Shown: piece after piece, positions 24,353-64,000 of the stretch
Layout of the letters: each line of letters begins with the position of its first letter
Numbering within the stretch: position 1 is the first letter of the stretch
Assembly: GCF_006345805.1 (NCBI RefSeq)
Contig: NC_043001.1
Span: 88,598,001 to 88,662,000 of the forward strand
DNA from: Octopus sinensis
Lineage: Eukaryota
Length of the DNA: 64,000 nt
Reading direction: 5' to 3'
Notes under the pieces: model-generated
What the model was told of the DNA's origin: nothing
The model's input: the letters and a program-made list of their open reading frames with translations, nothing else
Databases searched by the model: none
Position numbers and translations under genes: made by a program

Positions 24353-24395
24353 GGTGTTATTCTTACCACTATGCTGGCAACCAGAAACTTCTCCA
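24353..24395 (+). CDS. CaMKII: CaMKII CaM-binding exon: GVILTTMLATRNFS + 1 nt
   Basis: Pyrimidine tract plus ttgcag, 43 nt, GTAAGT donor. Ends in phase 1, as canonical CaMKII genes do before the variable linker. Confidence 0.95.
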
Positions 24396-25204
24396 GTAAG
24401 TCCCATTCTATGTGTTTATAATTTTTTCCTCAACTATCATTTCTCTGATCTGAATTTCTTTCTTTCTTGGGCACTAATGAACATGTTATACATGGAAAGT
24501 TTACATGCACAACTATATATTGTTTATGGGACCTTGAAACTGGAAACAAAATATACCACCATATCAATTCATATATGATTTGATTACTAAATATATCATG
24601 GTTCCTTTTAAATACCTTATTAGAGTTGTAATGTTCCATTTATCTTTTTGTTTTAAATTATGTTTCATCCTATTTGATTCTTATATAATCAGCTTAGAGT
24701 CCTACACTGTAAAGAAAACCAGGCTTTCCTTTCTGCAAGTCAGTGGAAGTTTGAAGTGAGAATTAATCTTCACATAAAATGGAACCTCACATTCTTAGAA
24801 AGTTCCTTCTCTCACTGGGAACTGGTCTGTTCTACTAAGAATCTGTTGTGTATTATAATACTCAATTCTTAATCTGTGTTAACAATATTTACTAAACAGA
24901 AATACACTCTGCCCTAACATTAATATTAATGTAAGTGTCTGCAATTATTACAAAATATTTAACTTATCAGCTGGAGTGATTTTTCAGTAAGTGTGTGACA
25001 AATACTTTTAAAAATCTTATCTTATAACCCTGCTGTAGAAAGAATTTTTTTTTATGCCGTTAAGTTATTAAATACATTTATGGTAGCAGGACCATTAATT
25101 GACTGTCTGTTCTCTTCCATTGAACATTAGTTCAATGTCATATCGGAAAATGCATGCTAATTTACATATATGTCATTCTTTGTTGCTTTCTTTGTGTGGT
25201 ATAG

Positions 25205-25213
25205 TAAACAAAG
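25205..25213 (+). CDS. CaMKII: Candidate 9-nt CaMKII linker microexon (I-N-K)
   Basis: tag|TAAACAAAG|GTAAGT, phase 1-1. About 70 nt AG-free upstream, with TGCATG, a CTAAT branch-like motif and a TGC-containing U tract. Confidence 0.5.
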
Positions 25214-25313
25214 GTAAGTCCAAATAGTGTGATAACTATATCAAGCATTTCACCTTGGCTTTTCCAATTTTCCTTTTTTTTTGTTTTTGTTGTTGTTTTT
25301 CCTGTAGTTTCAG

Positions 25314-25336
25314 GCTATCACACATTAACAGACTGA
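25314..25336 (+). CDS. Candidate short terminal exon (G/S-YHTLTD-stop)
   Basis: A long U tract ends in tandem acceptors cctgtag/tttcag, 6 nt apart and in the same phase. The phase-1 reading stops at 25334-25336. Confidence 0.25.
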
Positions 25337-28220
25337 GCTTAGAGTTAAGGGCATTTGAGCAGTGACAGAACAACTGTGCTAGAGTTTGATGCTGTGTTAT
25401 TATCCCTTGCCCTGCTCAACAAGACACTGCTTTTGTAAGATTAGAAGAGAAATGCAGCAATTTTACAGTACCTGAAGTCAGTGTGTAGTGAAATGATTGA
25501 TGGACATCAGTTATTGGACATCTTTATAGTAGTCATACCATAATTGAAACTCTTTTCTGGTGATTGTTGTCAATGTTAGATTCTGGCACAGTGGAGCTGG
25601 TCTGATTTATAATTATATATTGTTCTATATTTGTCTGTTGAATTGCTAATACTGAATGTTGTAAGTTTTGAAACTAAACAATCTGTCAATCAGTCAAACT
25701 TAAGATGCATATGACATTTCTACCAGTACTGAAAAACACTGCCAAATGCTATAATGGAGATGTTCTTAGCTATCCAGCGCTTGATCACAATGACCATTTG
25801 TGGTTTCTTCTAAGAATTTCTTATACAAATCTGCTTTTTCAGTATTAAAGAAGTATTTATCAAATTCACATTGATATCTTTACTGAAATTATTGACAGTG
25901 CCAATATGACTGACGATGTGATGTGACCAAATTCTTGTAACAGGATTCTTTATGTGTTACACTTTACCATGTTAACAATTAGAGGTCTGTAATTATATAA
26001 TACCAACCTTAGCATTGGTGAGATGATTGATAACCTTTTTACACAATTTCTGTTCAGTTTAGACTGCAGTATCTTGGTGATAACTATTCCTCCTAGAACC
26101 AGATATTATTTTAGCAGCAGACCTCGAAAATGTTATAAAGTAGGGTCAGCTATCATTATGCTAGCATCTACTCAGGAAAACATTATCCAAAAGTCTGTTT
26201 TATACCCTTTTGGATCACAAAACTTCTGCAACTGTTTCTTTCTTCAGCTTTGCTCTTCTCTGAGACCTGTTGAATTAGTTGTGTCTGTTCTCTCCAGTGT
26301 AATATAGTAATGGCAGATCAGGAAAGATAGTTTCACAGTCTTTTTGATACCTCTTAGTATTCCCATTCAAGTGACCAGCCAACAGGATTGTATATGTTGA
26401 CCATACAGGTAACTGAAAATTTGTCATTATGACTATAAGTTCATTTATTATTGCCTGTGTTGAGTATGAACATATACCCTGATAACTAACCTGATATGAA
26501 GTTCCTTAGAGAAGAATATCATCTCATAACTATATTTATGTCAATGCCTCTAATTAAAGCTTTACTTAGAAACCTGATTTTGGGGGTAAATATTAAATAA
26601 AACAGAAAATCCTTGCTAAATATCTGAGGATGATCTTGAATACTCCAGAGTGTTGCAAAAGTATGCTACTAAACTTCTAACCATTCATAGACAAGGATTT
26701 TCAGTCAGTTATGGTCTGTTTAATTCCTTTAAAAGAAAGATCCAGTATTTCAGTCATTCCTACTAAAAGAATTTGTTATCTCAAATTATTTTTGGATTAT
26801 ACTTTGGTTGAGGCCATACTTGATTAAGATTTTACATTGCTGTACTGTCAATCTCTCAACTCACTTAGTCAGCTTTAACTTCACTTTTCATTAGAAAAAT
26901 CTCTACTGTAGCTTCACTTGCAAAATATACATATACCTACCTTTTGCCACAAATATCATTGCCCTAATTGCCTCTGATGCCTTTTGTTTACGTTCTCAAT
27001 TATTTCAGTTTGATTTCCTAAATGTTGGCTGTTGCTTTTTACCAATGGTTTCTATTTTATATTTAATACTACTTCTATCATGTCTATCTTATTTGAGAGG
27101 AATTGACTTGACTCTTTGTTTATATAATAAACAATACAATATCAAATGTGTAAATTAACGAGCTACCTGTTTTTTTTTCTTTTCTTTTTCTTTTCTTTAT
27201 CTTTCATCCTTGTTAGGAACAGTGTTTGAGACAACTATGTCTCTAACAATTTTTTGTATAATTCTTTCCGAAATTCTAAATCACTGACTTCATGTCCTGT
27301 AGTATAACTAATGTTTCTAACATAAAGCAGCATGATAGCAAAATTAATTCATTAGCTGGTCAGAATTGAAGCTTAGCTATTGCTACGGTCTTCCCAAGAT
27401 TTTTTTTTTAAGACAAAGAAATCTCATTTGGCCTATAATTAATTTTTATAGAATAAAACTATTAAATTACATAAAAAATACTTATGGCAGTTCCCTTAGA
27501 TGAAAGATAGTATGTGTATAATAAACATAAAAATATTTTTTCTATGAGAATTCCCTACTTATTTTATTGTTTTCTTTCACTTGCCTGGTATTTCTATAGC
27601 CATACTAGTATGGACAGGATGGATTTTTAGGGGATGGGGAGCAGTTTTTCTATAGCTCACCAATGAACCACTCAGCAATGAAGTAGACATGGAACCTCTC
27701 ACTAGTCAGTTAGACTGAAGCAAGCAGAATTTATATATCCTAGCTTCACAAAAACAGTGGTTGTATTCATTAGATGTTAACTACAAGTAATTAGTAGTCT
27801 GTTGTGTTATTCTAGCTGTCTATTTTAAAATATAAGCTGGCATTTTTCAATCACCAGAAGGAAATGATGAATTAATGAGAAATAAATTTATTTTGGCTTT
27901 TGCACTAAAATCACAAAAGTTAATTTCACCAGTTTCTACCATTATCTTCTGCTTGTATTTCATTAAAGTCTGTTTTTGGTGACAAATATTTTCAGATTTC
28001 TTTTTGTTTTTGCAATGACACTTGTTTGTCTTGCTATTTGAGCAACAACTAGCCTAACTTCAATGGTAAAGTTTTTAACCTGCTCCTCTTTTATTTGACC
28101 AACAGACTACATGCTACTTAGCACCAGCAACAGTTATGTCAGTTGATCAGCACTAACATGATATATAAATATATAAATAGTAATAAACACCAACATTATA
28201 TATACATATATATATACACA

Positions 28221-28284
<64 letters not shown>

Positions 28285-28411
28285 TTTATTGATAAAGCTG
28301 CAGAAACATTACAAAAACTGTTTCATGTTCCCATTTGTTGGACAGTTTTGGTTCAGAACATGAAACTCTGAGTAACAGTTTTTGTGATATCTTTGCAGCT
28401 TTATTAATAAA
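28285..28411. repeat. Imperfect foldback hairpin (arms about 45-55 nt)
   Basis: tttattgataaagctgca..acaaaaactgtt..tcatgttc is mirrored by gaacatga..aacagtttttgt..tgcagctttattaataaa. Confidence 0.85.
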
Positions 28412-30925
28412 GCATATTACTCTATTTCCTGTATTCGAATGCTATTTTTTCCACCTTGTTTCACATTTATGTGCTTTCCTTGGTATACATACCTACATAT
28501 ATATATATATATATGTATATATAAGATAACATCAATAGGATATACATGCTAGTTTGCCTTTCCAACATATGTATCGACAAAGTTTTGATAATATAGAAAC
28601 ACTTTAAACAGCCCTTCATAGAAATATAATTAAGGAAGAGTTAACAGTAGTTCCTAACAATATATTAATGCAGATAATGTTAAGAAATTCTGACCTTAAC
28701 TGCCATTGTGATCACTTAATTTCCATTTTAACTCCATGTGTGGGCTGGTGTGTATATGTGTGAGGGGGTCTGAATAACATTTACTAACAACATGAGACTG
28801 TTTTGTTATGATTGCTATTGATTTGACACTCTATCTTAAACTAGTGTTTTCTTTCTTTTGTGTTTTTCTTAATTTGACATAAATTTCTTCATAATAACTT
28901 GTCTGTTCAATTTTACAGTTCCTCCATCAAATATAATTGGTTTACTCTTCATTGTGATGGAAATGTTTTCAACCACCCACAAACATAGACACACATAATT
29001 TTATCTTCAGCTTATTTGTCACAGAACACCTGTAAACATTGATACTATTTTCAGTAAAGTTTCAAGAAAATTTTAGTTAAAATTATGCTGAATATTTATT
29101 GTAAATCATCGTCTTGATATTGGAGATGTGCGATTGAATAGACAGTTCTATTAATTTATCATATATAGTTGTTTTGCTCTTGAATAATTTAGACTTGTTT
29201 GCATTTTGAGTTATCACTCATCTAATCTATGCTAATCAAAAGGAGGTAATTAGGTCAGAGAAAAATTTGATTAAGGATAATTTAATTTATTTAGTCCACT
29301 GAAATATTCTTTCTGTTGTTTGAATTATAAAGAGATCTGTTCTTCTGGCCGTGACCTTTGCGCCAATATGATTGCAGCTGACATCATGTAACTCTTCTCA
29401 GATGCCCTGCTACATGTCTTGTTTTTCAGACTCAGACTAAGTACACCCAATAAGCATTGTATTGCACTTTTATCATTTTCCTGGGGTCTGTAAAATGGCT
29501 ATGGCTTCTATATTATTGTGGTGAAATAATTCACATTAGAAATGATTCCAGTAAAACAGCAACTTTATAAGTCAACAAGGGTGCTATATGGTCCCTCAAC
29601 CAGCTAGAAATAAAAGCCAAATCTTCCTTAAGCACACAAAACATTATGTAGTCCTTGATACATTTATATATAAATAAAGGATGAGATGGTTGCTGCTAGG
29701 ATACCTTTTATGGTAGGTCTCCTGGATCTGCTGAATTAGTATTAAACAAAAGCAATTACAGTTACTTGAAACTGTCTGTGTAGCTATTGGAATTCTCAAA
29801 ATTATCCAACCTCTTTACATGAGAAGAAACTGGATGTCAATATAGAACAAAATTTTGTTTTTAAGAATTATAGACAACTTTGGTGAAATGAATATTTGTT
29901 TTCTTTTCTCTGAGTAACTAAGGATGTAGTTATCTACATAGAAATAACTACAATCATTATGGATTGAATGAAAAATATATGGTGTGAAATTTATAGAAAA
30001 TTATGGTTTCCTTGGCTGGATAACAAATATTAGGTTATGGAAATATTCTATAATTGATGAAAATGATAATTTTTCTGATTATTTCTAAACTAGGGATAAT
30101 ATCTTTATCTACTAGGCCACTGGTGCATGTACTTAGTGGATAAGGACATTATTTAAGAAATGAGGATCTTAGTTTAAATCAAGTCTCGGATAGAGTTTAG
30201 AGATCCAGGAATAAGATATTTGATGATAATGGTTAAATCATGATATAGGTATAAATATTGTAAAGATGAGGTTAATAGTCCAGAGAATTATAATCTTAAT
30301 TACAACCCATTTCAGTCATTTAGACATTCTTTAAATGAATTAACTGAATATTTACAAATCATCAAATTATATTAATTAAAATATACCATATAGCTCAAGC
30401 TTGTCAGATTTTAAAAAATGGATGCAAGCCAGTTAAATCCAACTGTATCATCACAGCTGTTTAAGAAATACCTTGCATTACAAAATATTGTAGAACAGAG
30501 CAGCTAATTACATCCAGTTAGCATATCTTTTGTTACACTAATAATAGTTTTGAACTTAGATATTTAGTTATGTCTGTTGATATTTCAGTAAACCCTAACC
30601 AGACTCTTATATTATACTGTTCCAATACTGCAACAATCACATGAGTATATTAGCTGTTACTTAAATTCTATGAAGTATGTCACTAAAATTTATTTAACAT
30701 ATAACATCTCCTTTTGTTAGTATTCTTATTTTGGTGAGTGATGTTTAAGTCTTTTGCAATCTAGCTAACCTTGACCACCTTTTGTGGATATAGTGTGTAA
30801 GGGTTGCGTTTAAGTTTAATTTCACTGAGAACTTTAATTATTAGCATCTGACTTTCTTTTCGTTTTCTTCAAACTGAGATTGTTTTACTTAAATATTTTA
30901 GTTACCTGATATTTGCCACTTGTTG

Positions 30926-30970
30926 TTACTACTACTACTACTGCTACTACTACTACTACTACTTCTACTA
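30926..30970. repeat. (CTA)n microsatellite
   Basis: Direct reading. It explains the poly-Leu ORF. Confidence 0.95.
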
Positions 30971-31237
30971 CTGTTTCCTGAGCCTCTCTTAATTTCTATT
31001 TTTTTATTGTATTTTAAATGTAATGTCTCTATAACTTGTTTAGATAATTCAGTTCTGTACAGTGACTTGTCAACTGTTTTCTCCTATCTCAATTATTTAA
31101 TTTCCACAAAAATCTACTATATGGCATGTTACATACTGAAACATTACAAACTAATACATTTCTTTTCAAATATTCTGCACTTCTTTAAATATCAACATTT
31201 CAATAAAAAGCAAAAACATGTTACTGTGAACATATGC

Positions 31238-31270
<33 letters not shown>

Positions 31271-31506
31271 TATATATATATAATAATGTTCAGCATGTTA
31301 TTGTTAAATATCTTAAATTTCTTACAAAATAATTTGTCTTCTCTGTAAATTAATCTGTTGATAATAAGCTGTCACTCTGAAAAGATATTTTCATTTAAAG
31401 TTTCATGCAATTTTATTTCCCTGTTCTCAATGTAATCTGTACTCTTCATCAGTTTTAAGATAGGTTTCATTGTGTGCGCATACATATACATACATACATA
31501 CATATA

Positions 31507-31548
<42 letters not shown>

Positions 31549-32419
31549 TAGATAGATAGATAGATATATATATATATAGATGTTATGTAATTAGAGATAT
31601 CTTTTCAAACTCTATGCTCTTTTCTAGTACCGTCACCTTGAAATGATTTCTCAGCTTTGCAACTGTCTTATACCAATATTATATATATATTTTTTTGTAG
31701 TAAATATACCTGATATACAGAATAACTCTGATTAACAAATGCATTAATAAGAAAAAATAATTTCTAAATTTAAAAGAATGAATTATTAATTTAACAATTT
31801 AAATTTCAATTAATTCTGCCATATTTGTTTTCATTAAAATCAATCTTTCCTAATTTCATAATATTTACATTTTAATAACTTATTTCCAGAGTGTGACCTA
31901 ACATGTTTTAAAATTAAAACGTCATTCACTTTGCTTAACCTTTAGTATTCTAAACAACTGCCTACACCAACAATGCTATATTATTATTGATATTAATTCT
32001 GCAGTAGTTGTAAACACTCAAATCTGACTACTTTACAAATACATACGACTCTGGGAGGTGAAAATTCAGTTTATATTTCATTGACAGCATGGTTTGTCAT
32101 AAGTAGTACAGCATAAACATGTCAACCATAGTTGCTTGGAGCATGCTTAAAAGTTAATTTACCTTTATTTGAGATTCCATACAGAATATACAATTCAGCA
32201 AAAAGGTGTCATTTTGTTGGCTTCTTAAATTATGTAACTGAAAACACCCTCTAAAAATTTATTTACAGTATTTTTTAATAACAGAAGGTTCTGTAAGCTT
32301 TATTAGGTAAACCACCAATCACTTATTTTTGAAATTGTTTAAATAAATCAAGTACAAAGAGTGTGTGTGTGTGTGCACATGTGTATGGATGGAGATATAG
32401 ATATGTCTGTATATATGTA

Positions 32420-32478
<59 letters not shown>

Positions 32479-33598
32479 TCACACACATGTATACATCTCT
32501 CTCCCTCTGTGTATATGTGTGTATATATATATATATACATATATATATATGATGTGTGCGTGTGTATTTTTATATGTATTCATTCATTTTTAGGTTTGTT
32601 TTTCTATGCTAGCATGGGTTACAGGAATATATTATTAAGGCATTATTTTATAGCTGGATGTTCTTCCATTTATTTACCCATACTTCTCTCACAAGTATGT
32701 GATATCATATTCTACACATCTTGAAAGGTACTAAACCAGTGTACAACCTGTTGACAGGGAAAATGACAATTATGTTACCACCCACGGAAGTGCAAGTATA
32801 AACAAACACATAGGCATATACATGTTCGCACGCGCGCACACACACACATATAATCACATATATATGATGGGCTTCTTTCAGTTTCTGTTTGCCAAATCCA
32901 TTGAGAAAGCCTTGGTCAGCTTGGGGTTATGCTAGAAAGCACCTGCTTGAGCTGTTGAACAGTTGGGCTGAATCTGAAATCATTGAACCTCTTAACCACA
33001 CCTGTAACTATTATATGTCTATATATATTTTTATTATTTTTAATCATCAGAAAGTTCCAAAAGTGACTTGACAACCAAAGGTTTCGTCTCATGCCCTTGA
33101 GTCACTTTTAGCCCTTGTGTGACTTTTGTAAGTTTCTGCTGATTAAAAATGATACACACACACACATATAGCAAAGGGATAGAGATTTAGGAAATCTAAG
33201 TGAGTATCTCAGTTAGCACTCCATGTGAAATCCAATCTAACAGAATGTATAGGAAGGAAAATTAGAATTAGTATTTCATTTATCCAAAAGATGCATACAA
33301 ATTTGAAATCCAAGGAAATATACTAATTATGAGATTGGTGCATCCCTCACAGACTGTAAACATAGACAAAAGAATACAAATGACAGTATCACATTTATTA
33401 ACCAGTTACAACCATTTCAATAATTAGTGATATTGTTACATCAATCAACATGCTAGTTTATGCAAATAAAGAACATTTGTGTAAAACTATACAAATATTA
33501 AATGAAATTTTCCACATATCATTTCAGAAGCATTTGTATGTGTTTGTGTATAGAGATAGATACACACACACATATGTGTTTGTGTGTGTGTGTGTGTA

Positions 33599-33645
<47 letters not shown>

Positions 33646-36990: not shown

Positions 36991-37024
36991 ATGAAATATA
37001 TATTTTAATTTTAGATATTTCGTT

Positions 37025-39570: not shown

Positions 39571-40701
39571 TAAACAAAGAAAAAATATATATGAATGCAT
39601 ATCATTTCCTCAATTCCTCTATCCTTATCTGCAACATTGATTCAGATTTTGAATCTCAATGTGTCAATGTGACATTTCTTCTTTCATCAAGAATACCTTC
39701 AATTGGTTGTGGACTCTACACTCTACCATGCTCAGGTCATCAACTACTCTATCCCACCCCTACTCTCAATGTGCACCTACAGACCAGATTCCGTTTCCTT
39801 CCCTTTCTACTTGTCCACTCTTCTATTGTATAACACATGTATCCATAACTTCTAAATACTACTCTCTGACTCTTACAACTGCTCTGATCTTTCTTACACC
39901 ACTTCTTTAAGACAGATTCAAACCTTGGCAAGACCTCAGCTAATTATAAGTCCCATGGCACTTGTCCATACACAGTCAAGCACTTTTAAATGCATTCACC
40001 TGTTATTTCTACAGTTATCACTGCCCTTAAGTCACAGTACCACCTCACACAAAGCTTCTGCTGCACATCTGTCAGTGTGATATACTGCATCATCTACAAT
40101 CTTTAGGGTACTTTTTACACAAGCAAATCAAACCATTGCTTTGCTATTCGCTTTTGCACACACATTCAGTTTCCTACTATATATCTCAGGTCAACTCATA
40201 ACCACACACTTCAGTACAACAGACCAATCTATGATCCACTTATCAGTCTATGACATCTCTACACACAACGGAGCCACAAAGTCAAAGAAATATGAAAGGA
40301 ACAATTCTTATTCAAACTTAGAACCCTGGCACTGGTGGGTTTGTATGAATCCCTTATCCATATATAACCTGCCCACTGAACTGCCTTTCTACCATAATCT
40401 TACCACCAATCCTACTCCTAATTTTACATACCCATCAACTTTAGAAATAAGTCTCCTTTCTTTCCCCTTTCACTCTCTTCCTTTCTTCCCTTGTCTATTT
40501 CTATTCCCTTCTCTGACTACCTACACCTTGTACTCTTCCCCCCCCCCACCATCTATTTTGCACTTAAATCTCCCCATCTGACATCTCTTTATCCTATCCT
40601 TATCATTACACACTGAGTTCACAATCATGAAGCATCTCTGATGACACCTTTAATGAAACAACTGTGGCCATGTTGTGAGAGTATGAATAAATTGATATTA
40701 T

Positions 40702-40744
<43 letters not shown>

Positions 40745-41296
40745 GTGTGGTGTCCTTGTGCCTGGATTTATGGTTGAATAGGTAACTGTATAGTAATGTA
40801 ACCAATTTTCTATTGAACACTCTGTACTTTGTTATGCCATGTTTGTTTAGTGTAGTGTGTGTGAAAATAAACACAATGTTTATCGACCTTTAAGCTGAGT
40901 TTCTTTCACAAGCATGTTCAGATTGTGATTTAAAATCATTCTAGCTGTTAATCAGTAGTCTTATCTTTACTATTGTCTCTCTCACTCATTAGTTCATACC
41001 TCTTATTAGTTATCCTCATACTTTACAGCATCTTAAAACATTAATTTTGATACATTTCACCTTTTGTATTAGATTCACAGTCCTCAAGTGGCCAACCTCA
41101 TCATTATGAAACCTCTCATGCCATTTTCCCTATCAAAATGCAAAATATGTGAAGCTTTGAGACTTCATATAGCACCCTTAGCCATTGTATACTTCAGCAC
41201 TACTCTTAGTTACCAGTTTGCAACCTTGTGGGAACATATATCTCTATTCTAGTCTATTTTCTCTTAAATCTTGTTTATTTATGTCATTGTTGATAG

Positions 41297-42222
41297 ACTC
41301 TAGTGAAAGTAGTTTGGAAGATTTGAATGAACAAAGAACATTGGACAAATATGGAGAAGATCAAGCACCAGCTCGGCCTCAACCTTCCGCTCCTCCATTA
41401 AATTACTCGGATACAGCTTCAACACCATCTCCCAGTTTGGTTTCCAGGCCACATCGTAGAGCTCCAATGAGAGCAAAACCAATTGATCTACCTGAGGAAT
41501 CACCTACGTTCCATACCACCCCTCCATATCAGCCAGAGCAAACTTCAAAGAAAACAGGCATGAACAAACTTCACCGTCCCTTTGAAGTACCTGTTTTTAA
41601 TGACAGAGGCATTGGTTTGCCCAAATTGCAACCAGTAACTATGGTAGCTAAACCAAATGCCCAGTTTTCTCCACATCGCTTCAAAACAAGTTCTGATGTC
41701 CAAATCACTAATTATGCTTCCAACTTACCTTTCTTAAGATCAACACCAAGTCATAGTAAGCTAGGATTTAAAGATCTACATGAACTTCAACCTCAGTATT
41801 CCTATGATCAAATGAAATATTTCCCAGGTGGCCAAAATCAAAGACAACACTACATGCAATCTCCTCAATATTCACCTGTGAACCCTAAGACTCGTTTTGA
41901 ACAGTTTTATGATAGATCCTCTGAGTATGCTGTTCTTCATTCAGTACCTATGCCACAGCCAGCAAGTATATATGGTAGTATTTCAATGCCATCTTTGTGT
42001 GATATTGACCCTTTGGTGCCAGTGTCATATGTCAGGGATCCCAGATATGCACATACTCAGTCCCACTTTTTAAACAGAAAACACAATACTCATTTAGCAC
42101 CTGGTTGCAATCAAATGTCAGCATCTGACTACAATCTCCACAACATCTCAGATAATGTTGGTTTTGAAAACCTGTTCTCAACACCTATGTATGGAGCACC
42201 TCAAGCACATCGGAGATTTTAA
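41297..42222 (+). CDS. Large S/P/Q/Y-rich coding exon (308 aa to stop), probable alternative CaMKII linker or terminal exon
   Basis: 926 nt open reading frame in repeat-free, GC-elevated sequence. The acceptor ttgatag|AC opens in phase 1, matching exon 24353-24395. An internal phase-1 donor ATA|GTAAGC lies after 41755. Membership in CaMKII is inferred. Confidence 0.7.
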
Positions 42223-42999
42223 CTCTGATACACTGATTTCTTATCGCTTGCTATCATCATCCTCACAACTAGCTTCTTTCTTCTGACTGATGTTCAAATG
42301 GTACAGTTAATCCTCAATGAATAGAAAGAGACAGCAGACCTGCTTTTGGTTCCCAATTGGAAGTTAGTGTTCTAATGATGCTAGAAGAGGCATCAAAGTC
42401 TCAACGTTGAATTTTTTCTTATCCTTACTAAGCAAAGCTTCAGTGAAAGATTACAGAACCAGTAGCATATCAGACAAAATATCTGTGTAGTGTTCAGTTT
42501 TGCCTTTTGATTTAATCAACTCTATGCAATGAGGGTTGATTAAATCAAACACACTATCCTCCAGTATTTCTGCTATTGTGGCAAAATTAGAAATTATTAT
42601 TAGGATTATCTACTATAGAATCAAAGAAGCTACCAAGGAGCTGAGAAAGATACCAGAATCTAAAAGAACTAATGACCATCTGTGTTAACAGACCTCTGTT
42701 CAGTAAAGTTCACAAAATACCTGAAATCTTAGAATTCTCTTCTATCTATATCATCATAACATATTTTTAAACTTTATCCATGAGCTGATTCAGTATCATT
42801 GTTTCAGTTCTCAAAGAGGGAAAAACTATTTTTAGAAAAGTAGAAACAGTGTAGTTAAAATATGTTCCATCTCTAAAGGTGGGGTTAATAGTCCAAAAAA
42901 TTATGATCATATTAACTATAACTCAACTCTGTCACTTAAACTTTGGATGGTATGCAGTCTTATTTCAGTCCCTGATAAACATCATCATCATTATTGTTC

Positions 43000-43005
<6 letters not shown>

Positions 43006-43046
<41 letters not shown>

Positions 43047-43084
43047 CATTATTACTATTACTATTATTATTATTATTATTATTA
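43006..43084. repeat. (TAT)n microsatellite
   Basis: Direct reading. Confidence 0.95.
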
Positions 43085-43172
43085 ATTTTGGATGTTCATC
43101 AGGGCATCTATTTTGATGTCTAAAAAGTGGCATGTTAAGAACTCTGTCAGTTTTTCTGTTCTGTTGTTGCAG

Positions 43173-43226
43173 GTCTCAAATATGCCTTACATACAACTTC
43201 ATACAGTGCTCTGATATATCTCCATA
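43173..43226 (+). CDS. Candidate 54-nt phase 1-1 cassette exon (G/S-LKYALHTTSYSALIYLH)
   Basis: tttttctgttctgttgttgcag acceptor, ATA|GTAACA donor, frame-preserving. No homology recognised. Confidence 0.25.
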
Positions 43227-43680
43227 GTAACAAGATCAATACTTATGTAGAATTAGAATTCATTCAACAACTATTTATCCATTTTCAAAGACAACCATTT
43301 AAAAATAAAAATCACACTCCCACATGCACACACTAAAATAATGACTATAACAAGCTTGTATCCATACTTGAGTTAATTTATGTTGCTGTTGTCATTCTTC
43401 TAGTTAACAATGAATGCATTACCTGAGGAATAAAATCAACAAACTGATTTATAGTCTTGTGTAACTATGGATGCAGAGTTGTCATAAAAATTCAGGATGA
43501 GCCCCCATTGTTGCACTCTTTTATCCATCCTTTTATATTCTTGTTATATCCTAACAAGAACCTAGTTATTAACCTTGTGTAACCATTTATAAGTTCTTTA
43601 TAATTGAAGTTCTTTTCTATTAATCATAGTTGCAGTGTTTTTCTTTTTTTTTTATATTGGGTTTGTTTGCTTTTAAACAG

Positions 43681-43727
43681 AATATGGCACAAGCTTAATT
43701 ACCCAAGATTTATGGGAGACTGTTTAG
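43681..43727 (+). CDS. Candidate terminal exon (K/E-YGTSLITQDLWETV-stop)
   Basis: A long U tract plus ttttaaacag acceptor. The phase-1 reading ends at TAG 43725-43727, and AATAAA plus a GU-rich element lie about 240 nt downstream. Confidence 0.35.
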
Positions 43728-43966
43728 AAGTTTGAATTTAACCACTACATCCTATACTACACTTACATACGCATGTGGAAATATATTAATATATGGCATG
43801 TTTGGCTAAATACATGACAAAGTCTATTGACCAGTTTAATGTTCAGCTCATCTGATTGTCTGATGTCTCTCACCAGGTCAAAATTGTAAACAGCTCAACA
43901 TTAAAGTGGTTCATTGACTTTCCAGTTATGCATTCTAAAACATATGCAAAAAAGAATTTCATTCCT

Positions 43967-43997
43967 AATAAATCGTATTTTTGTGTTTGTGCGTGTA
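43967..43997 (+). terminator. Candidate polyadenylation signal with a downstream GU-rich element
   Basis: AATAAA at 43967-43972 followed by tttttgtgtttgtgcgtgt. Confidence 0.35.
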
Positions 43998-45089
43998 TTT
44001 ACATACATATATATATATGCTTGCATATCAATCTATCTAATCTATCCACACATACCCATATACATACACACACAAATATAAAAATAGAAATTTTTGCAAA
44101 TGTTTACACTTGCAGAGAGAGAACAATTAACAACAGAGTTAAGTGAGATTGAACTCATATCTCATGGTTTATCTACAGAGTATTCTTCACTATTCATTCT
44201 CTTCCTAAATTTATACTTATGTATTTACATTTCAAAATCATTCATCAACAACTTTCAGTTTGGTTTCCTTAATATGAGCCATGGGAAAAGGAAATATTTT
44301 GCATTTGACTGTGGTTCTCTTTACAAATATTTAGTGTGGAGATAGCTTCTCGTCCACAAAGATGTACTGAAACAAATTGGTGAGGCATTTATGAATTGAC
44401 TTAGATGACATATGAGTGTGTGTGTGTGGTCAGTCCCACCAACCACTACTGTTTATCATTATACCTTTCTTTCTCCATCACTCTGTCCCTCTCTTTTATT
44501 ATGACATCTGTGTAACAAAGGAAAGCCTCGGAAATGTGTTCAATACTTACTACTCCTTTGTGGATTATCATAATTTTCTCACCCTCATTTTGCAGTTCAT
44601 TGACATCTCCCACTCACTCAGTCACTCTCTCTTACCATTGCTGATCTTTGCTGCTACCCATAAGTTGCTCTCTCACTTATGACCACCCATTTTTATTGCT
44701 ATCCTTCAATCCTTCATTCTCCTTTATTCTATGTCATCCCCTGTCACTCTTTGTTGACATGCATCAATCTCCCTCTGTTTATCACATTGTCTCTTCTTAA
44801 CATGGAGCTACCTGTCATGGTTTTCCATTACTCAATCACCTTGTTCTTACCACTCTGTCTCCTTTCATCACTCATTCTTATCCTCTTTTTTCTATTTACA
44901 CTCTTGGTCATGTTTGCTCTGAGCAAACAGAGATAACTTGTCTTGCAAGAGACAAAGGAACCTCTTTAGTGCTGATTCCCTGATAAAATATATCCAGTAC
45001 ACTCTGTAAAGTGCTTGGCAAATGAACAGAGATAATGTAGAGTGGAGAGGGCTCTTTGAACTTTCTGGAAAGCTGACAACCACCCTAGT

Positions 45090-47738: not shown

Positions 47739-47740
<2 letters not shown>

Positions 47741-47900
47741 ATCTATTATATTTACACATATATTTCTAAATTTCACTTCAATATGACATAAAATCTGTTT
47801 TCTATTTTGAATATCTATTTCCTCTGTAATTGAAATTGTTGTCTGCCATTGTTAACGAGATTTTCTTAATTATTATTTTCTGTTTTGTCATTAAAAAAAG

Positions 47901-47909
47901 GGGTGAAAG
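47901..47909 (+). CDS. CaMKII: Candidate 9-nt CaMKII linker microexon (G-V-K)
   Basis: aag|GGGTGAAAG|GTTAGT. Phase 1-1 gives (G/R)VK, like the canonical DGVKES linker. The A-run before the acceptor is atypical. Confidence 0.4.
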
Positions 47910-47993
47910 GTTAGTAACCTACATTTTTCCTTCTGCATGCCTGAGCTTGCTCTAAATAATACATACTGAAGCCAAAATATGGCATTAACTTTT

Positions 47994-50904: not shown

Positions 50905-50979
<75 letters not shown>

Positions 50980-54082: not shown

Positions 54083-54121
54083 TGAAGGTGCATGGCCTAA
54101 CTACTAGGCCATGCACCTTCA
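54083..54121. repeat. Perfect 17-bp hairpin with a 5-nt loop at the head of a minus-strand SINE
   Basis: TGAAGGTGCATGGCCTA-actac-TAGGCCATGCACCTTCA. Confidence 0.95.
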
Positions 54122-54771
54122 CCCACCAGTATCAAAGGCCCTGTAAAAATGTTATGAGCACTTACCCATCTTTCTCTGAATAAACTGTAAATATATAGCC
54201 TCTTAGTATGAATATTATTTTTATGACAGAATTAGTAGCGCTTTCTGGATTCAACATGTGGTGTTTAGTTTCTCTTCTTAGGTTCTGAATTCAAATACAG
54301 TTCATATGGGCTTCCCCTTTTAAATTTAACTTCACTTCACTTTACCGTTGTGAACATATACTCTGAGCTGCAACCTTTTTTTTCTCCTACATTTTTTTTT
54401 TTTTACTAATAAAGTCATTTGCTAAAGGTCAGTATTTTATTCATGTGTATATTTAATTCTCAGTTACCAACCTATAAGTTAAAATATGATTTTCCCAATT
54501 AACCTGGCTAGCAGAAATTCTCTTTGAAACACTAAACATCCATTCCACCCTGACTTTCCAATCCTTAAGACCACTGACACTGGAATTGATCCAAGTTAAG
54601 AAATAGTCCTACAGATATATTGTGTTTTGTGATAGGACTAATGTTAACTAACCAGTGCATCCAAACCATTGTCATAATACTATAATACATGTCTTCCTTT
54701 AGATTTTTTAGATTTTGTTATTGTTAAATTGTTCCCCTTTTTTGCTCTCCAAATTGGGGTGTTTTTATTAT

Positions 54772-54811
<40 letters not shown>

Positions 54812-55271
54812 GATGTTTTTCTGTATTTTTAATCAAAAATGCATACATATCTGTGTGTATGTATGCATACATACATACACGTGTGTGTATGTATATCTAT
54901 ATCTATTTATATATATATCTATCTATCTATATATATATATATGCCTAGTACAATATTTTTCACCACTGAGTAGGTGTAGTAAGACTTCATCGTGCTCATT
55001 CCTTTCACCAGTTTAAAGACCGGATCCTTTCCATTTGGCATTGTCTGTCTTGTCTAAATTTATTTTTTATCAGCTGATCTTAATGGAATTATCTCCTTTT
55101 TCTTTTTCTTTTTTACATTTTAAACACTCTTAGAAGGAGATTTTTGTCTACTAATTGGCCTGGATGATCTCAGTTGATCAACACACTATTACATAATAAA
55201 ATAACATTACTACTAAAATAACTATTAACAAAAACTGTGAGTGTGTATGTGTGTGTGTGTGCATATGTACA

Positions 55272-55309
<38 letters not shown>

Positions 55310-58300
55310 TGTACATGTATATTTCATATGCGTGTATGTGTGGATATATATATATATTTCAACTGTTTCAAGTTCTGATTCACACTGTGTTGTATATAAA
55401 ATATTGTTTAATTAATGACATTCCAACGAAAGCAAATGCAGAAAAATTAAGATGTCTACAACTGTGGTCACATAATTTATGACGGCTGTATATTTATGGT
55501 CACTACTGTATGCGATTGATTGGGGAAACAATTAGGGTACATCTTTTTTTATGTGTGGCCAACAAACCATAAGACCTTCTATCAGGAAACTCCCTCCCTC
55601 TTCTTTGCACTCATCATAAAGGGCTTACATTATTTCACCCCACCTAGGCTTTGTTCTATTTAAATTTCATTTCTACTGATTCATGGTCTGTTATGCATAA
55701 AACACACACACAAATGTATTTATTTGTATTGGATATATGTGCAAGCACTTATATACATGCATACATGTTTATAATTTAAGGCATATACATATAAAGATAC
55801 AATTGTGTGTGTACACATATATCCATCTATCTGTTTATATATGTGTATAATGTTGGTAGTTCAGCCATCAGATTTGATGATGACCTAGCAACTTCAAAAA
55901 AAAAAAAAAACAGGTAAAAAGAAAAAGAGAATGAATGAAAAGGTTATAAAATGATACCTATAGTTATGTTCATCTATTGGTGATCATTGAGGACAACATT
56001 TCAGCCATATGGCACCTCAACAGAAGATGCAACCATGTGGGGAACAGAGAATTACACCTGCTTCCACTTACACTACAGCTTTTCTGTGTGTCTAGAGCTA
56101 AGGAAGTTGTGGGATTTTATCATGATAGATGTGTGATACCCCCACTGCTGCCATAAAAGGTCCACCATCAGTGGCTCTGAGAAGTTTCAACTATCACTAA
56201 TCAATGAAGACTGCAACTAACTACACAGCTTATCAACAAAGAATGCAGTCATAGAATGGGGGAAGGTGGGAAGGGTTGTTGGCAGAAAACCTTGACTGCT
56301 CCTCTTTACACAACACCTTCCTTGTACCTGAAACTAAGGATCTATGGTATTTCATTATTACAAATGTGCTGAGCACTCCAACCACTACCACGAGACCTCT
56401 TACTATGTATCAGTTTATTATGTACTATACATACTGAACTTGCTAGACACAAGTGCTAAACTAGCGCGTGACCGAATATAATGATCATTGGCAACTAAAC
56501 TGGCATTTGCACCAAGCTTGCTTGGTAAGAAAGATGACTTGTGATATCCTGCCGAATGAAAAGCAAGACTTGTCAAAGGCAAATGAATCTAAAGGAGGTA
56601 AAGGCTGTACAGTAATGTCTACATATATACATCAAATATTTGTGTGTATTTAGTAGCATGTTTTCATTTATTGACCAAATGAAGCATAAAAGAAATAAGT
56701 AACATTCATGGTTTTGAAGTTGGTGACCGCAGGCCTATAGGAGAAACTGTTGCAAGTGGTAACATACTATCATATTGGGTTAGAAGCCATGATGCAGGGC
56801 ATACAACTGGAATGATACTTTATAGCCTGGATATGCATCAAATTACACGGCTCTGTAAGGTTTGAAGATCCTTGTAGTCACTTTGTCAATCTACTACCTC
56901 ACATAAAAGTTCAGTTGTCTTGGTTTTATCTTAACCACTGAGCAAATTGTATAAGAATGAGAGAGTCTGATGGGCATGCAGCTCTTTCTCACTTTCAAAA
57001 GCATTGCACTAACCTAGTATTTGTGTCTAGTGAGGAAAACTGTGTGGTGCATGCATGCCCTCACACACATCATATTGAGTCAAATCTTGAGCTCTGTATA
57101 CTGATCAACTGATCAGTAGACTTTAGCTGTTCAGAGATGTCTGTTGACTCAGTTAATTTTCTTTTGTTTAATATCCACTTCTCACTGGAAATTTCCATCA
57201 CATACTCTTTCTCTCTCTCTGACCTGCATGCACACTCATACATACACAGACAGACACACACATGTCTACATCCTCACTTTTACCCCCTCTCTGTTGCTCT
57301 CTCTTTATATCTATGTGTCTACTGAAATTTCTCCCTTTCTTACACACTCTGTGTGTGTGTGTCTCTCTCTTTCTTGCTCTCTCACACATTGTCTTACTAG
57401 AGGTCTTCCTGTCTTATTAATTATATTATTGTTTACCTACCAACCTATTATCTATTTTGTGTGAGTGTCTATTTATCTCCACTTGTCCAACAACTAATCT
57501 CTCTACTTAAATGTGTCCCTCTCTGTCTCTTTCTTCTATCTGCCTCTCTCTCTTTATTCCCCACCACCAACCAACACCTATGAAACAAGTACTATATGAA
57601 GAATCTAGCTCTACCCATATTAACAAATTTCATAAGGCACCCCTCCTAGACTTTCTACCTATTCTACACCTATGCTGTTATGTTTCATCCCCTAGGGAGT
57701 ACACAACAGGTTAGTAACAATGGCCAGTCACAAGGAACACCACCTCCCACACCCAGCTTTACTGCTGCAGGTAATTATTCTATTCTCCTTTATATCTCTA
57801 CAACTAATACCCTACATTTGCACTTGTTTCTACCATCAATTACACCACCTTTACTAATAACAAATACTAAGGATAACTATGGAATCAGTTTGCTCTTTTG
57901 TATTTAGTTTGTTTGAAATATATATATATGAAGATTTTTGGTTGTTTTTTGTTGTGTTTATATTTACTCATGTTTTTATCAAAGAGTAACATTTTGATAA
58001 AAAGTGTAGTTCTGTATTACCTCTTGGTAAGTGGGATAAGAGATGTAAGCTATCATCATCACCATCATCATCATTGTCATTAGTGCTGTTGTTTATGTTT
58101 GAGTTTTTCCTGTAATGGCTGATATTGAACAGTAACCCTCTATATAATACACCTTCTCGCCATCTTATCAACTTTCATCATTCTAGGTCTCACCTATTTT
58201 CTTAATTTGAAGTCCTCTTTGGTCTTCATCTGTCACAAATTCTTTTCATGTCCACCTGGACTACATTTTCATCCACCCAGCATCCTCCAGTTACATTAAT

Positions 58301-60884
58301 TGCCCACTGTATGAGTTTAAGAATCTTTTTCATCTATATATGCTAATATTCTGAGCCCAGGAGTTTTCTCTTCTCTCTTCTACTTAGATTTCATGAATTA
58401 TCATTGTACATTTAACTGGCCATATTTACTTTGTTCCTCTACAGTAGCTGTAAATATTATACGTTCAATATCCATGTCTCACTGCTATACATTATTACTC
58501 CCTTTACACACATTACATATTATACACACATATAATCTGCTAAATTCCTTGCCTTGTGTCTCACTACCATACAATCTGAAAGATCATACCTGCTTCACTG
58601 CCATCACATATGCCATCATACATCTTACACACATATCTTAAAAATGAAGAATAATACATCAGATAATGTAGTCCTAAGTGAACTATGTCCAAATAAAAGA
58701 TAGAATCTCAATGATCATGATTGAAACATCTTTGATCATAAGTCTAGATCAAATTTAAATAACAGCACATCACAAACACACTACATATAATACATTATAT
58801 GCGCAGCCCCTAAAACCAGATTCACTGTTGTCTTAGTTTTCTATATCCCACCAGTGGGTTGTTGCTCTGGAGAAATTTAGTGAATGCAATGTTATTACTT
58901 CTGGCATCAATAAAGCTTTTGACGACATCTGCTCCTCTTGAGCTCCACTCACATCTCATCTCTTAAAATGGTAGCTTCTTATCAAATCACACTCACATCT
59001 ATTGACAAAGCACTTTCTCTACCTCACTCTATCAATTTTGCATCCCTTAGGTTCATTATGTTCCCTCCACTCTCTTAACACATCAATGACCTACTTGTCA
59101 TCACATTTACCATCACCTGCCCTTGCACAGCTGATACTACACTTCATTCTTCCCTAATCATTCCTAATTATGCATCAGCCACATACAACCTAGATACCAC
59201 ATATCAAAATCCATACCGATTCCATAAATAGTGACCTCAAATCAATCTCTAAAAGGAAATGCCAATCTTGTTTCATTTAACTATGAAGTACCACAGATGG
59301 TACTCATTACTCTATACTTTTCTGTAAACATGTAGCATGCAACTAGAGCCATCACAATCTCTCCATATGATGATCCATACTATCATTGAGGATCACTCCT
59401 GACAAGAGCACATTGTTAACATACCAAGGGCTGTATCACCACAAGTGGCCCTATGCTTCAGAGCCCATGTGATCTCTACTCAGTTATATGCAACCCCTTC
59501 ATCTCTCCCCTTCTCAACATATTGTTGTGTCCAAACACATCCTAATGCTAACCCCTCAATGACCACTATGTCTGTCCAGTGTTCCTCCAGAAGATTGTCC
59601 TTTGGAACTCACTCCTTGTCTTTCACACAGGTGTTAACTTGCTATGGTTCAGAAGGAACATTAATGGCATCAATCTCGGTAGTTTATGAGAACCCATGAA
59701 GGACATGAACATGCACACACACACACACACTCTAGAGCAAGCAAGTAAAAAGAAATTTTTTTTTAATGTTTCACTATTACATGTTACACCTATTGTATAC
59801 ATCACATTCACTGTCCATCTTTCAATACCATACATCTTCACATTTCATACAACCGGCCATGTAATGATCATCAAAATATGTTTCATCTTTGTCAAACCCA
59901 ATCTTAAAAGTAATTACCTCATGCAGATAACATTACCAACATTATTGTCAGCTATATATCAAGGTAACAAATCACTGCTAGTTTGGTATCTCAGTAACAA
60001 TGTCATCATTATTACTGCTAGCTAGATATCAATATATCAATGTCATCATCATACCACCACCATCATTGCCAGTTAAATATCAGGGTATTAATATCCACTC
60101 ATTTGATGGTCTTCCTTTTATAACTGCTGTTAACTGCTCTATCATACAATTACAGCATGGTGTTTATTTGACCACGGGCACAATAGAACACTAATTACAG
60201 GATATAAACTACCGACCTTCCAATACCCTAACACCTCAGCAATCCAGATCTCTTAAGTTACCAATGATAACCAGAGAATCTGCTGTCATATAATCAGCAA
60301 TTAACAAAAAAGAAAAACACTCTTCTATTACTACTTCTTGACTTCTGTTCAGTACACTTTATATATTTAATCGATTCTGCAAAGTTCATGCGTTGCCTGT
60401 CATCCATGTTTATCTGTTTTTACACTTTATATTTTACTACAGCTTCTTCTGTATAGATAAGATGAACAGGCTTATTATAGCAACTCAGTCAATAAATCAT
60501 CTTTCTTATATCTTCCTATAACTTATCACTGTTGTGCTTAATGCATTTTAAACACTGCAACAGCACGTATACAATCAGTCTACACAGTTATTTCTGATTG
60601 ACCTATTCATATTGACCACATCCAGCAGTGTGTCTGTGTGTGTAGTGTATATGTCTGTATGTGTGTATAAATTAGCTATTATGGAAACAGTTAAAATTTT
60701 AAATATAAATTATATATGATATTTACAAGCACTCCTAAAAACAAATAAAAAGGAGAACTACTTGTTACCCACCTGCAGTTGATATCCTAACAGAGTGGAT
60801 AACCTTGTTTTCTTTTTTACAATTTTAATCAGTGCTCATAACCATTATTTGCGTGTGTATGTGTTTGTAGGCTATATAGGCACA

Positions 60885-61260
60885 GATATAGCTTTGTGGT
60901 TAAGAAGTTTGCTTACCAGCTATATAGCTTTAGGTTCAGCCCTGCTGCATGACATCCTGGGCAAATGTCTTCTGCTATAACCCCCATTGAAAAGACCTAC
61001 TGTGGGTTTGTGTGTATATATGCACATATGTGTTTGTTTGAATTTGTATCTCTCAAACAGTTACTCAGCTACTAGCAGTGATGTTGTCCTTTATTTTTAC
61101 AAATCTGCTGGCTTTGCAGTTTCAAAGACAAGTGAAATAAGAGATCCCTTCCATGTAAAGTAGGTAAAGGTTAGTGATAGGAAGGTTATTCACCTATGAA
61201 ACAATGCCTCATTACTGTAATCATTTAACCCATTCCAGAATGGAAAGACAAATGTGAAAA
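60885..61260 (+). mobile_element. tRNA-derived SINE with an RTE-type tail
   Basis: gctttgtggttaagaagtttgctt...ggttcagccctgctgcatgacatcctgggcaaatgtcttctgctata...ggttagtgataggaagg. Confidence 0.7.
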
Positions 61261-64000
61261 CAAATATATTTAGATAACCTTAATCTTTGGGTAGGACTGT
61301 GTGCATACTTGTGTGTACTTTACAGAATACAGTGATTTTGAATAGTCTTTGTATGTAGCATCAAATTTACACTTTAAAGCTTTTGTTTGAAAGTTAGATA
61401 AAATAAGTAGTTATTTGTGTGTGAATATGTGTATACATTACATACATAGCTGTACCTTTCCATTTATACATAGTGTGTGTAAAGAGGTAGTAAACATGTA
61501 TTAACTGTAGTAATTTAATTGTTAGTGTTTTTCTCCTATGCTGTCATTATGTCAAATTACTGGTTTTAACTCCTGTATTTATTGCACCATTTCATAGTAG
61601 ATTACCCTTCATTAACTTTACTGGCAATCAACTTCAGCTAGTTAAGTGGCTTGTGTCAGAGCTATGAGCAGGTTTCAAGAGAGGTTTTTACTCCAGGTGT
61701 TATGTGTACACAGACATAACTTTCTGAAACTATTTGAAATGCAAATTGTTTAGCAAAGTGAAGTAAAATTGTTAGTATGTTGGTGTTTTCTAAAATTAGT
61801 TCTTGTTTTGATTTGTTTAATAGTTAATTAAGCATATGAAGGTTATTTATCAGTGTTGTACCACCTAAGAGCATTCAGTATCCTGCTATAGTTATGAAAT
61901 CTGATCAGTATAAAACCATGAACAGAACTATATTCTTTTATCCTATAATGTCAAGATTCTACTTTAGGATTTGATTGATGAGATGAGTTGGATGTTTCAT
62001 TAACATATAATCTCCATTTCACCATTTATAATATACAATCCAAGGACCAATACAAAGTCTAAGTCTGTTTCTAAAATTTCAACATCTTGTAGCTAACTTG
62101 ATAGAAGCACACAAGATTATCCACGATCTTTCCAACAACAGCTCTAGCCACTTTTCTCTGTTCAATACCTTTTATTACCTGTAAACATGCTCATAAAATC
62201 AAAAAACAGCATAGCATACAGACTTTCAGAAACCATTTTTCATACTCACAATTGCAGAAGCTTGAAATAAACTGTGTTGGTCGTTAGATGTCTTGACATT
62301 GTATCCTTCAAAAATTCTAAGCTTCCCCAAATTTGCCAATATCAGTCCTGATGTACCCTTTCTTGTTTATGGCTCATTTTCTGTTCATTTTTCTGAATTT
62401 TTTGTTGTATTTTGTTCTGTGCATGTGTAGTTTTGGCTATCAATTTTGTTTGTCTTTACTTAATGCTGCTTTCTGTTCCTCTTTCACCCTTTTCTGATTA
62501 ACTGTAGTGTACCAGAGCAGTGTATACAATAAGCTCATTATTATAATAAATCATGTTTGTTGATCATTAGCTTAATTTATGAAATGGGAGAGCAGTTTTA
62601 ATACTTGATTTCTTGTACAAATAATTTGATTTTTTTTTAACAATGCTTTATTTTTTTTGATTTAATCATTATCATCATTATCATCATCATTTTAATATCT
62701 GCTTTTCCATGCTTGCATGGATTGGACAATGCATGGTTCATTGACCTTTTGACATTTCAACTTTATTGAATTCTTTGTTTCTCTAAAAGCTTCTTTTCCA
62801 CATAATTATCATTTTATTAACTACCAAATTATAATGTAACGTTGTTTATATTTTTATCTGATTATTAATGAGAGGCTTTAGTGACTGAGTTTCTACTACC
62901 TAGATAGTTTCGATGATGGATGGACCTTATTGGATCATTAGCCTTAGCTATAATTTAGTTGGATAAATGATATCTCAAGTCATTCTTTTTACTTCCAATA
63001 TAATCTATACAATTTGTTGTTTTATTTTTACCACTAAAGACTGACTTTTTTTGTTTGATTCATTATTTCTGATTTGATTCATTCTTTCAACATATTCTCC
63101 CACCCTTACTAATGTATATATATAATTGCAGTGTTATTCTTTCTCTCCACATCACTCCAAACGTCATTACAATGGATTATAAAACTACACATTTGTGTAG
63201 CATTATATTTTATTTTATCAAAGAAGTAACTTACCTCAGATTTTATGTTTAGAATACTTTTTATGCTGTCTTGAATACATTGTTAGAACGATGTTCTGAC
63301 TAAACTTGAAATACATCTCATAATTGATTAGTAATTCATGAACAACTACTATTGACTTTTTGATGGCAGTGGTGGAATGGTGTTGTTGTTGTTGGTAGTG
63401 GTGGTGTTTAGCCTTAGATCAGCCATAATTGAGCAGAACTATGATCAAAGGTGTTCCAGCTGTCTTCGTGTGTCAGGGACTTATCCTTCTTTATTTAAGA
63501 CATTGCAATTCAAGGGATACTTGGCTGCTGTTCCTAACACAGGCTGCCACCATATCTTTGATAATATTTATAGTGTATACTTATGCTAGGGCCTAAATAG
63601 GTTAGCTACGCTGGCCCATGCTGTTCTACAGCTGCTTCCCTTCACATTTACAGCAATTACCCATTGTACAATTGACACTTGGTCGGTCAATAATACAGTT
63701 ACTATGATTTATATACACCTGGTTAATGTAATCACACAAAAAACGGCATTTATTTCATTTCCACAAAGCAATTTATCACAGTTTTAAATGATCAATGGTT
63801 TTGTATCTGTGCTAGGATATAGTAAAAGTCAGCCATTGAAGAGTACAGTTGCCACTGCTAACCCGACTAGTAAGAATGATCTTACCCAAGTATTATTGAG
63901 ATAAAGCAATGGAGTTGATTACAACATTGCAAGATAAGCATATATCAGACATTAATTAAAAAGCTTCATCTAGAAATCTTTGTTGGTTATGGAAATGCTG

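Follow-up and report, generated by a model that had tools for sequence, protein, structure and literature searches.

The stretch of DNA considered here is a window of 64,000 nucleotides (nt) from Octopus sinensis (contig NC_043001.1, positions 88,598,001 to 88,662,000 of the forward strand), and all coordinates in it are counted from its first letter. The window is the inner portion of one gene for CaMKII, the Ca2+/calmodulin (CaM)-dependent kinase, on the + strand. The annotated range of this gene is 412 kb in O. sinensis, and the CaMKII gene of O. bimaculoides covers 343 kb. The original prediction for this DNA, made from the sequence alone, described a possible system of hub-less CaMKII isoforms, consisting of a CaM-binding exon that ends in phase 1, several terminal exons that could follow it, and no exon for the hub domain in the remaining 39.6 kb. 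One element of that system is exceptional: a long reading frame that opens at an acceptor at position 41297 and may end a CaMKII without a hub.

Three exons for the end of the kinase domain and for the regulatory segment are found in the window by tblastn. In the lines below, a slash marks a splice boundary.

15587..15709, + strand: CaMKII exon, end of the kinase domain; 123 nt, 41 residues (YPSPEWDT...HPWIC); tctag/TAT...TGT/gtaagt.
18778..18861, + strand: CaMKII exon, autoinhibitory segment with the T286-equivalent threonine; 84 nt, 28 residues.
24353..24395, + strand: CaM-binding exon; 43 nt, GVILTTMLATRNFS plus 1 nt, phase 1 end; donor gtaagt.

All three are 100% identical to predicted CaMKII isoforms of O. 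sinensis, and across them the threonine of RQET and the TT pair of a canonical CaMKII are present. Their sizes of 123, 84 and 43 nt agree with the exon sizes of vertebrate CaMKII genes. The phase 1 end of the CaM-binding exon is as originally predicted. With a human CAMK2D query, tblastn detects no further exon of the gene in the 15.5 kb that precede 15587, so that introns of more than 15 kb are normal for this gene.

The linker region follows the CaM-binding exon. It contains three exons of the canonical kind.

25205..25213, + strand: INK microexon; 9 nt, TAAACAAAG, I-N-K, phase 1 to phase 1; flanks ...gtgtggtatag/ and /gtaagtcc.
47901..47909, + strand: GVK microexon; 9 nt, GGGTGAAAG, G-V-K; flanks aaaaag/ and /gttagt.
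57696..57770, + strand: canonical linker exon; 75 nt, GSTQQVSNNGQSQGTPPPTPSFTAA (GSTQQ...FTAA), phase 1 to phase 1; flanks cccctag/ and /gtaatt.

The pattern AG-TH AAY AAR G-GT, which describes the INK microexon, matches at two sites, 25205-25213 and 29572-29580. The second of these was rejected, since it has no pyrimidine tract and its donor is gtgcta. The peptide RNFSINK occurs in 19 of the 39 octopus CaMKII isoforms that were retrieved. The GVK microexon is the sole pattern match in 24396-64000; spliced straight to 24395 it reads R-V-K, and both the INKGVK and the RVK junctions are found in hub-containing octopus isoforms. The 75-nt exon matches an O. sinensis isoform in 25 of 25 residues (the tblastn high-scoring segment pair extends into the intron, giving 86.7% identity overall and an E-value of 9e-12), and is used in the hub-containing isoforms X1, X4, X28 and X39. 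In the O. bimaculoides assembly (CM046605.1), a gap of 618 N lies exactly at the expected place of the GVK microexon (window ~47740..47990; L001 16342..16959), with the same (TC)n and (TA)n microsatellites on its two sides. Because of this gap, the GVK exon is not annotatable from that assembly.

The exon of main concern lies between the two microexons.

41297..42222, + strand: candidate alternative last exon, coding part; acceptor ttgttgatag/AC; 308 codons (D/N-SSESSLEDLNEQ...APQAHRRF); TAA at 42220-42222.
42223..43450, + strand: putative 3' untranslated region (3'UTR) of this exon, of presumed extent.

The acceptor at 41297 (gatag/AC) is in frame with the upstream phase 1 donor. An 'a' or 'g' from the donor plus AC gives Asn or Asp, and 308 open codons follow. 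The number of such stretches expected in the region by chance is 2e-4. The original prediction gave the acceptor and was silent on the length of the frame behind it.

The tail agrees at 100% of its residues with the C-terminal part of XP_036358779.1 (P0123), a predicted protein of 626 residues annotated as 'CaMKII isoform X11'. Isoform X11 consists of a complete kinase domain and regulatory segment, followed by ...RNFS-INK-DSSESSLEDLNEQ...APQAHRRF, with no hub; the stretch across its kinase/tail junction is ...NFSINKDSSESS.... In terms of the window, it runs from the 24353-24395 exon through the INK microexon at 25205-25213 to the 41297 exon. In X11 the tail is thus joined by way of the 9-nt microexon, and not straight to 24395. 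The accession falls in the run XP_036358768-96 of the other retrieved isoforms of the gene. The 41297 exon has an in-frame stop, and no hub coding follows it in the product, as in an alternative last exon. The hub-less product is already in RefSeq as a gene model, and the sequence itself is not new. No papers on octopus CaMKII isoforms of this hub-less, long-tailed kind were found, and look-ups of the window ORF and of X11 in exact-sequence contig indexes gave no match.

Relatives of the tail are confined to octopods. A protein search with the tail gives two clusters. The first contains XP_052823880.1 of O. bimaculoides (313 residues, 92% identical, named 'trithorax group protein osa-like'), with XP_036358779.1 as its second member. 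The second is an open reading frame (ORF) of 313 residues, 84% identical, on three Logan contigs of a third octopod. The name 'trithorax group protein osa-like' is unsupported, since the protein has no ARID or other Pfam domain and no homolog beyond octopods.

The reading frame has the same length in all three octopods, with 313 codons from an ATG at 41281 and zero indels in O. bimaculoides and the third species. Between the window and the third species, the flanks carry 10 indel events in ~1.26 kb; at that rate ~7 would be expected in 926 nt, and 0 are seen. When the 87 lineage-assigned substitutions are placed at random with the substitution spectrum of the flanks, ~3.5 stop codons are expected, and the probability that 87 neutral changes create none is 0.028. 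Synonymous changes are in slight excess (30 of 87, against 25.7% expected; p=0.044), which corresponds to an omega of ~0.66. The Nei-Gojobori dN/dS of the ORF is 0.46-0.61. In 3 of 3 species, both the acceptor AG and the tract that precedes it are conserved.

Two further ORFs on the + strand, at 40141-40581 (146 residues) and 43856-44146 (96 residues), flank the tail exon in C-rich low-complexity sequence. They are rejected as coding, as both have frameshifts and stops in O. bimaculoides. They serve as internal controls for the tail frame. Nucleotide identity was dropped as a sign of constraint, because ungapped intron likewise reaches 94-98% identity when the window is compared with O. bimaculoides, and a figure of ~91% from BLAST reflected gaps. 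In the same comparison, the 2.8 kb from 40200 to 43000, which include ~1.1 kb upstream of the acceptor, have gaps of at most 1% per 200-nt window; further along the intron, many 200-nt windows carry gaps of several per cent or more. The part upstream of the acceptor might be regulatory, for instance as a promoter or a region that controls splicing. Judged from these sequence comparisons, the 41297 site appears to open a real, conserved coding exon, in which constraint is evident on the reading frame and slight on single residues. Such a pattern would be expected of a disordered region or a young gene.

The tail itself has few recognisable features. It is rich in Pro, Ser, Gln and Tyr (12% Pro, 11% Ser, 7% Gln) and contains several PxxP motifs and a single RxxT site. 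No Pfam family matches it at E<=1, ARID included. A profile search of 1.84 billion representative proteins finds no homolog outside octopods, the ORF of the third octopod being the only match. AlphaFold2, working from a shallow three-sequence alignment, gives it no secondary structure and a mean predicted local distance difference test (pLDDT) score of 42.5, and the tail is thus predicted to be disordered. A relationship between the start of the tail, SSESSLEDLNEQ, and the conserved linker exon ESTDSSATLEDEDTK was considered and rejected, as 38% of shuffled tails attain the local alignment score of 21 that the two sequences have.

The hub domain makes CaMKII a holoenzyme and underlies its memory-like autonomy. 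The prediction that no recognisable hub exon follows up to the window end holds in every search made. Neither a human CAMK2D query (tblastn, word size 2, E<=100) nor a query of the O. sinensis linker and hub finds a hub exon anywhere in the 64 kb. When a profile made of 32 distinct mollusc hub sequences is compared with the fragments of all six frames of the window (hmmsearch --max), the best E-value is 3.8, which is noise, and the weak matches are mostly on the wrong strand.

The hub is nevertheless part of the gene. The octopus hub sequence is RKQEIIKLTEQLIAA...HRSGSLQAVSSK; a 680-residue octopus gene product carries the hub (PF08332) that the window lacks, and 38 of the 39 retrieved octopus isoforms have the hub C-terminus HRSGSLQAVSSK at their end. 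The O. bimaculoides gene continues for 111 kb past the tail ORF, compared with 22 kb in the window. The hub exons lie beyond the window, as had been supposed, and would be expected within about 90-150 kb of its end. Because canonical linker exons occur downstream at 47901-47909 and 57696-57770, and because 38 of 39 isoforms end in the hub, hub-containing transcripts run through the whole region and leave the window. A stretch of 39.6 kb without a hub exon is ordinary for a gene of 412 kb with introns of more than 15 kb, and fails as evidence in itself for hub-less isoforms. The original prediction also left out the three canonical linker exons that lie within this 'hub-less' stretch.

We think it somewhat probable that 41297 begins an alternative last exon of CaMKII, which yields a hub-less kinase with the tail. 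That the acceptor places a phase 1 splice exactly in the long frame supports this reading. After the CaM-binding exon, a transcript would enter a heavily alternatively spliced linker region. Most transcripts would go on to the linker exons at 25205 (INK), 47901 (GVK) and 57696 (GSTQQ...), then to exons past the window and the hub. In a minority, the INK donor at 25213, or possibly the donor at 24395, would be joined to the rather weak acceptor at 41297. The 308 codons would then be translated up to the TAA at 42220, and the mRNA would presumably be cleaved and polyadenylated within ~1.2 kb downstream. The most likely mechanism is a competition between the alternative last exon and splicing to the downstream linker exons.

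The product would be a protein of 626 residues that keeps the whole kinase domain, the RQET threonine of the autoinhibitory segment, the CaM-binding site and the TT pair, with the linker and hub replaced by an octopod-specific tail. Without a hub, it would not join dodecameric holoenzymes and would act as a monomeric Ca2+/CaM-dependent kinase, lacking efficient inter-subunit autophosphorylation of the T286 type. A monomer is expected for X11 because CaMKII 1-316, from which the hub has been deleted, occurs as a monomer and fails to co-cluster with holoenzymes (PMC5882894). The role of the tail would probably be localisation or partner binding.

Three known systems can be compared with this exon. 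The closest in architecture is exon 17.5 of mouse Camk2d (NM_001293666), described in 2025. This alternative last exon of 2.7 kb, which is polyadenylated and contains its own stop, is located after linker exon 17 and before exon 18, and its inclusion and that of the normal last exon exclude each other. Its use, mostly in the olfactory bulb, is supported by reverse transcription PCR and long reads (PMC12060085). Like the octopus exon, it is a long terminal exon in the linker region before the hub exons, with a predicted product of kinase and regulatory segment and no hub. The mouse exon follows the conserved linker exon 17, whereas the octopus exon follows the CaM-binding exon and a 9-nt microexon. 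The octopus exon adds a conserved, lineage-specific frame of 308 residues, not a short read-through. It is known only from gene-model prediction, and the likeness is one of architecture.

The engineered CaMKII 1-316 truncations (PMC5882894; PMC12236485) have nearly the same breakpoint, just past the CaM-binding segment. These are tail-free laboratory constructs, unlike the octopus form with its natural disordered extension of 308 residues.

The third comparison is with canonical CaMKII linker splicing, as in vertebrate alpha, beta, gamma and delta, insect and mollusc genes, which takes place at the same position, after the 43-nt phase 1 CaM-binding exon. It uses cassette exons that keep phase 1, and at least 39 predicted octopus isoforms are built in this way. 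Cassette exons rejoin the hub, but the 41297 exon ends the protein.

Several observations weigh against an alternative last exon. The tail is present in only 1 of the 39 retrieved octopus isoforms, and this isoform, X11, was modelled by computation (Gnomon). The poly(A) site is putative. The hexamer nearest to the stop, ATTAAA at 42539, is not conserved and is an unlikely poly(A) signal; O. bimaculoides shares AATAAA at 43304 and 43429, along with most of the surrounding sequence, and such hexamers are frequent in AT-rich DNA. The substitution rate in the ORF (3.8% and 8.0%) is not below that of the upstream flank (2.5% and 7.7%). The remaining observations of this kind concern the way in which the same ORF appears in other octopods, and they lead to the strongest of the alternative explanations.

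In that explanation, the ORF is an independent gene nested in a CaMKII intron on the same strand, with its own start site, and X11 is a chimeric model. Its product would be a disordered protein of 313 residues. The NCBI annotation of O. bimaculoides gives the ORF exactly in this form, as a separate single-exon gene of 313 residues inside the 343-kb CaMKII gene. This orthologous ORF (XP_052823880.1) lies in the same place in the CaMKII gene and differs from X11 in being a stand-alone gene. Its model starts at the ATG at window position 41281, 16 nt upstream of the acceptor, and this ATG and the 313-codon frame are conserved in three species. The three Logan contigs (runs SRR11869384, SRR11869390 and SRR11869391) remain colinear with genomic sequence for as much as 570 nt ahead of the acceptor, with no splice. 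Conservation likewise extends upstream of the acceptor, as the stretch from 40200 to 43000 is nearly gap-free against O. bimaculoides.

These points have their counterparts. The ATG lies within the upstream tract of the acceptor, with T at -3 and T at +4, a start context judged poor from the sequence. In the O. sinensis annotation, which disagrees with that of O. bimaculoides, there is no nested gene in the CaMKII range and the ORF is joined to CaMKII. The frame matches a phase 1 splice. At their ends the Logan contigs have microsatellites or poly-T; they may be genomic DNA, and are uninformative on splicing. We regard a nested gene as unlikely, but as an explanation to be taken seriously. It is compatible with an alternative last exon, and both could hold.

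An ORF that is non-functional or barely functional is the next alternative, either as a young chance ORF or as a piece of intron that is occasionally exonised. The absence of any homolog outside octopods, the lack of a Pfam domain and of predicted structure, an omega only marginally below 1, and a nucleotide identity not above that of the flanks would all suit such an origin. Against it, the chance expectation of the frame is very small, and the frame has stayed open and free of indels in three species, in which about seven indels and between three and four stops would have been expected. The neighbouring ORFs have decayed over the same period, and two independent NCBI annotations treat the sequence as coding. 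We consider this explanation improbable.

The last alternative is the version of the original prediction, in which several phase 1 terminal exons (25314, 41297, 43681 and others) give rise to a family of monomeric kinases. Two of its acceptors remain to be described.

25314..25337, + strand: candidate acceptor, tttcag/GC; stop after 7 codons; chance level; used by 0 of 39 isoforms.
43681..43728, + strand: candidate acceptor, aaacag/AA; stop after 15 codons; chance level; used by 0 of 39 isoforms.

The region 24396-64000 contains 2009 AG dinucleotides, each of which reaches a stop, after a median of 12 codons. For the 147 that have a good pyrimidine tract, the median is 14 codons. The frequency of stop triplets on the + strand is 0.060. 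A phase 1 acceptor that reaches a stop is no more than a chance observation. All three predicted AGs exist, and only 41297 is exceptional; the 3'UTR of its exon may include the site at 43681. Although an AG follows a pyrimidine-rich tract at all three acceptors, a family of such exons is very improbable, given that 147 sites of comparable quality occur in the region, that the frames at 25314 and 43681 are of chance length, and that their tails are found in no retrieved isoform. Of the predicted hub-less kinases with new tails, the one from 41297 survives as X11, and the system of several exons is not supported.

Other sequences in the gene and in databases resemble alternative exons or bear on the hub. 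Many short database proteins named 'CaMKII' (P0001-P0046), which come from many animals, have RNFS-SKS and then unrelated sequence at their ends, and P0254, a partial cephalopod entry, has the same pattern. A protein search with an 83-residue query gave short fragments only and no full-length CaMKII. The tails RNFSSKS... were rejected as a linker exon, as they are a read-through of the conserved donor A/GTAAGTCC. In the window, reading through the donor at 24392..24420 yields RNFS-SKSHSMCL before a stop is reached. The database tails come from gene callers that read on into the intron, and are not isoforms.

Outside the window, a segment of the kinase domain differs among octopus isoforms, being MQQILESVNYCHHHGIVH or IQQILEGVNHCHQNSIIH (P0249 compared with P0252 and P0160). 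The sequences suggest two exons that are mutually exclusive. Exons 6A and 6B of Camk2d have been described at the same place (PMC12060085).

Most of ten octopus isoforms compared at full length have an insert of 37 residues in the hub, AKYCHRDTISKNDGILEYCIPRTPTIVEQGKFPADNP, between FHKFYFDH and VLSKNSK, and an isoform of 478 residues is without it. An alternative exon within the oligomerisation domain could alter holoenzyme assembly.

The window also carries two transposon sequences, both in the same CaMKII intron.

7442..10420, - strand: ORF of a non-LTR (long terminal repeat) retrotransposon of the LINE (long interspersed nuclear element) type; intact, 992 residues; endonuclease/exonuclease/phosphatase domain; reverse transcriptase domain (Pfam RVT_1, 3e-30).
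12912..13409, + strand: fragment of a mariner-type transposon; ORF of 165 residues; Transposase_1, partial DDE domain (9e-21).

The interest of the 41297 exon has limits. Isoform X11 was already predicted in RefSeq, the hub-free stretch is typical of a 412-kb gene, and a precedent exists in the mouse. To our knowledge, natural hub-less CaMKII isoforms are rare and little studied. A fuller account, which we offer tentatively and hold to be possible at most, is that a coding sequence specific to octopods was born in the CaMKII linker intron and is used as a last exon, producing a natural monomeric CaMKII with a disordered targeting tail of 308 residues, perhaps also expressed alone.

If this is true, it would be a case in which a taxonomically restricted coding exon has been grafted onto an ancient kinase, the birth of a gene having been captured by a signalling gene that is among the most conserved in the nervous system. 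It would also provide a natural experiment on monomeric CaMKII in a large invertebrate brain.

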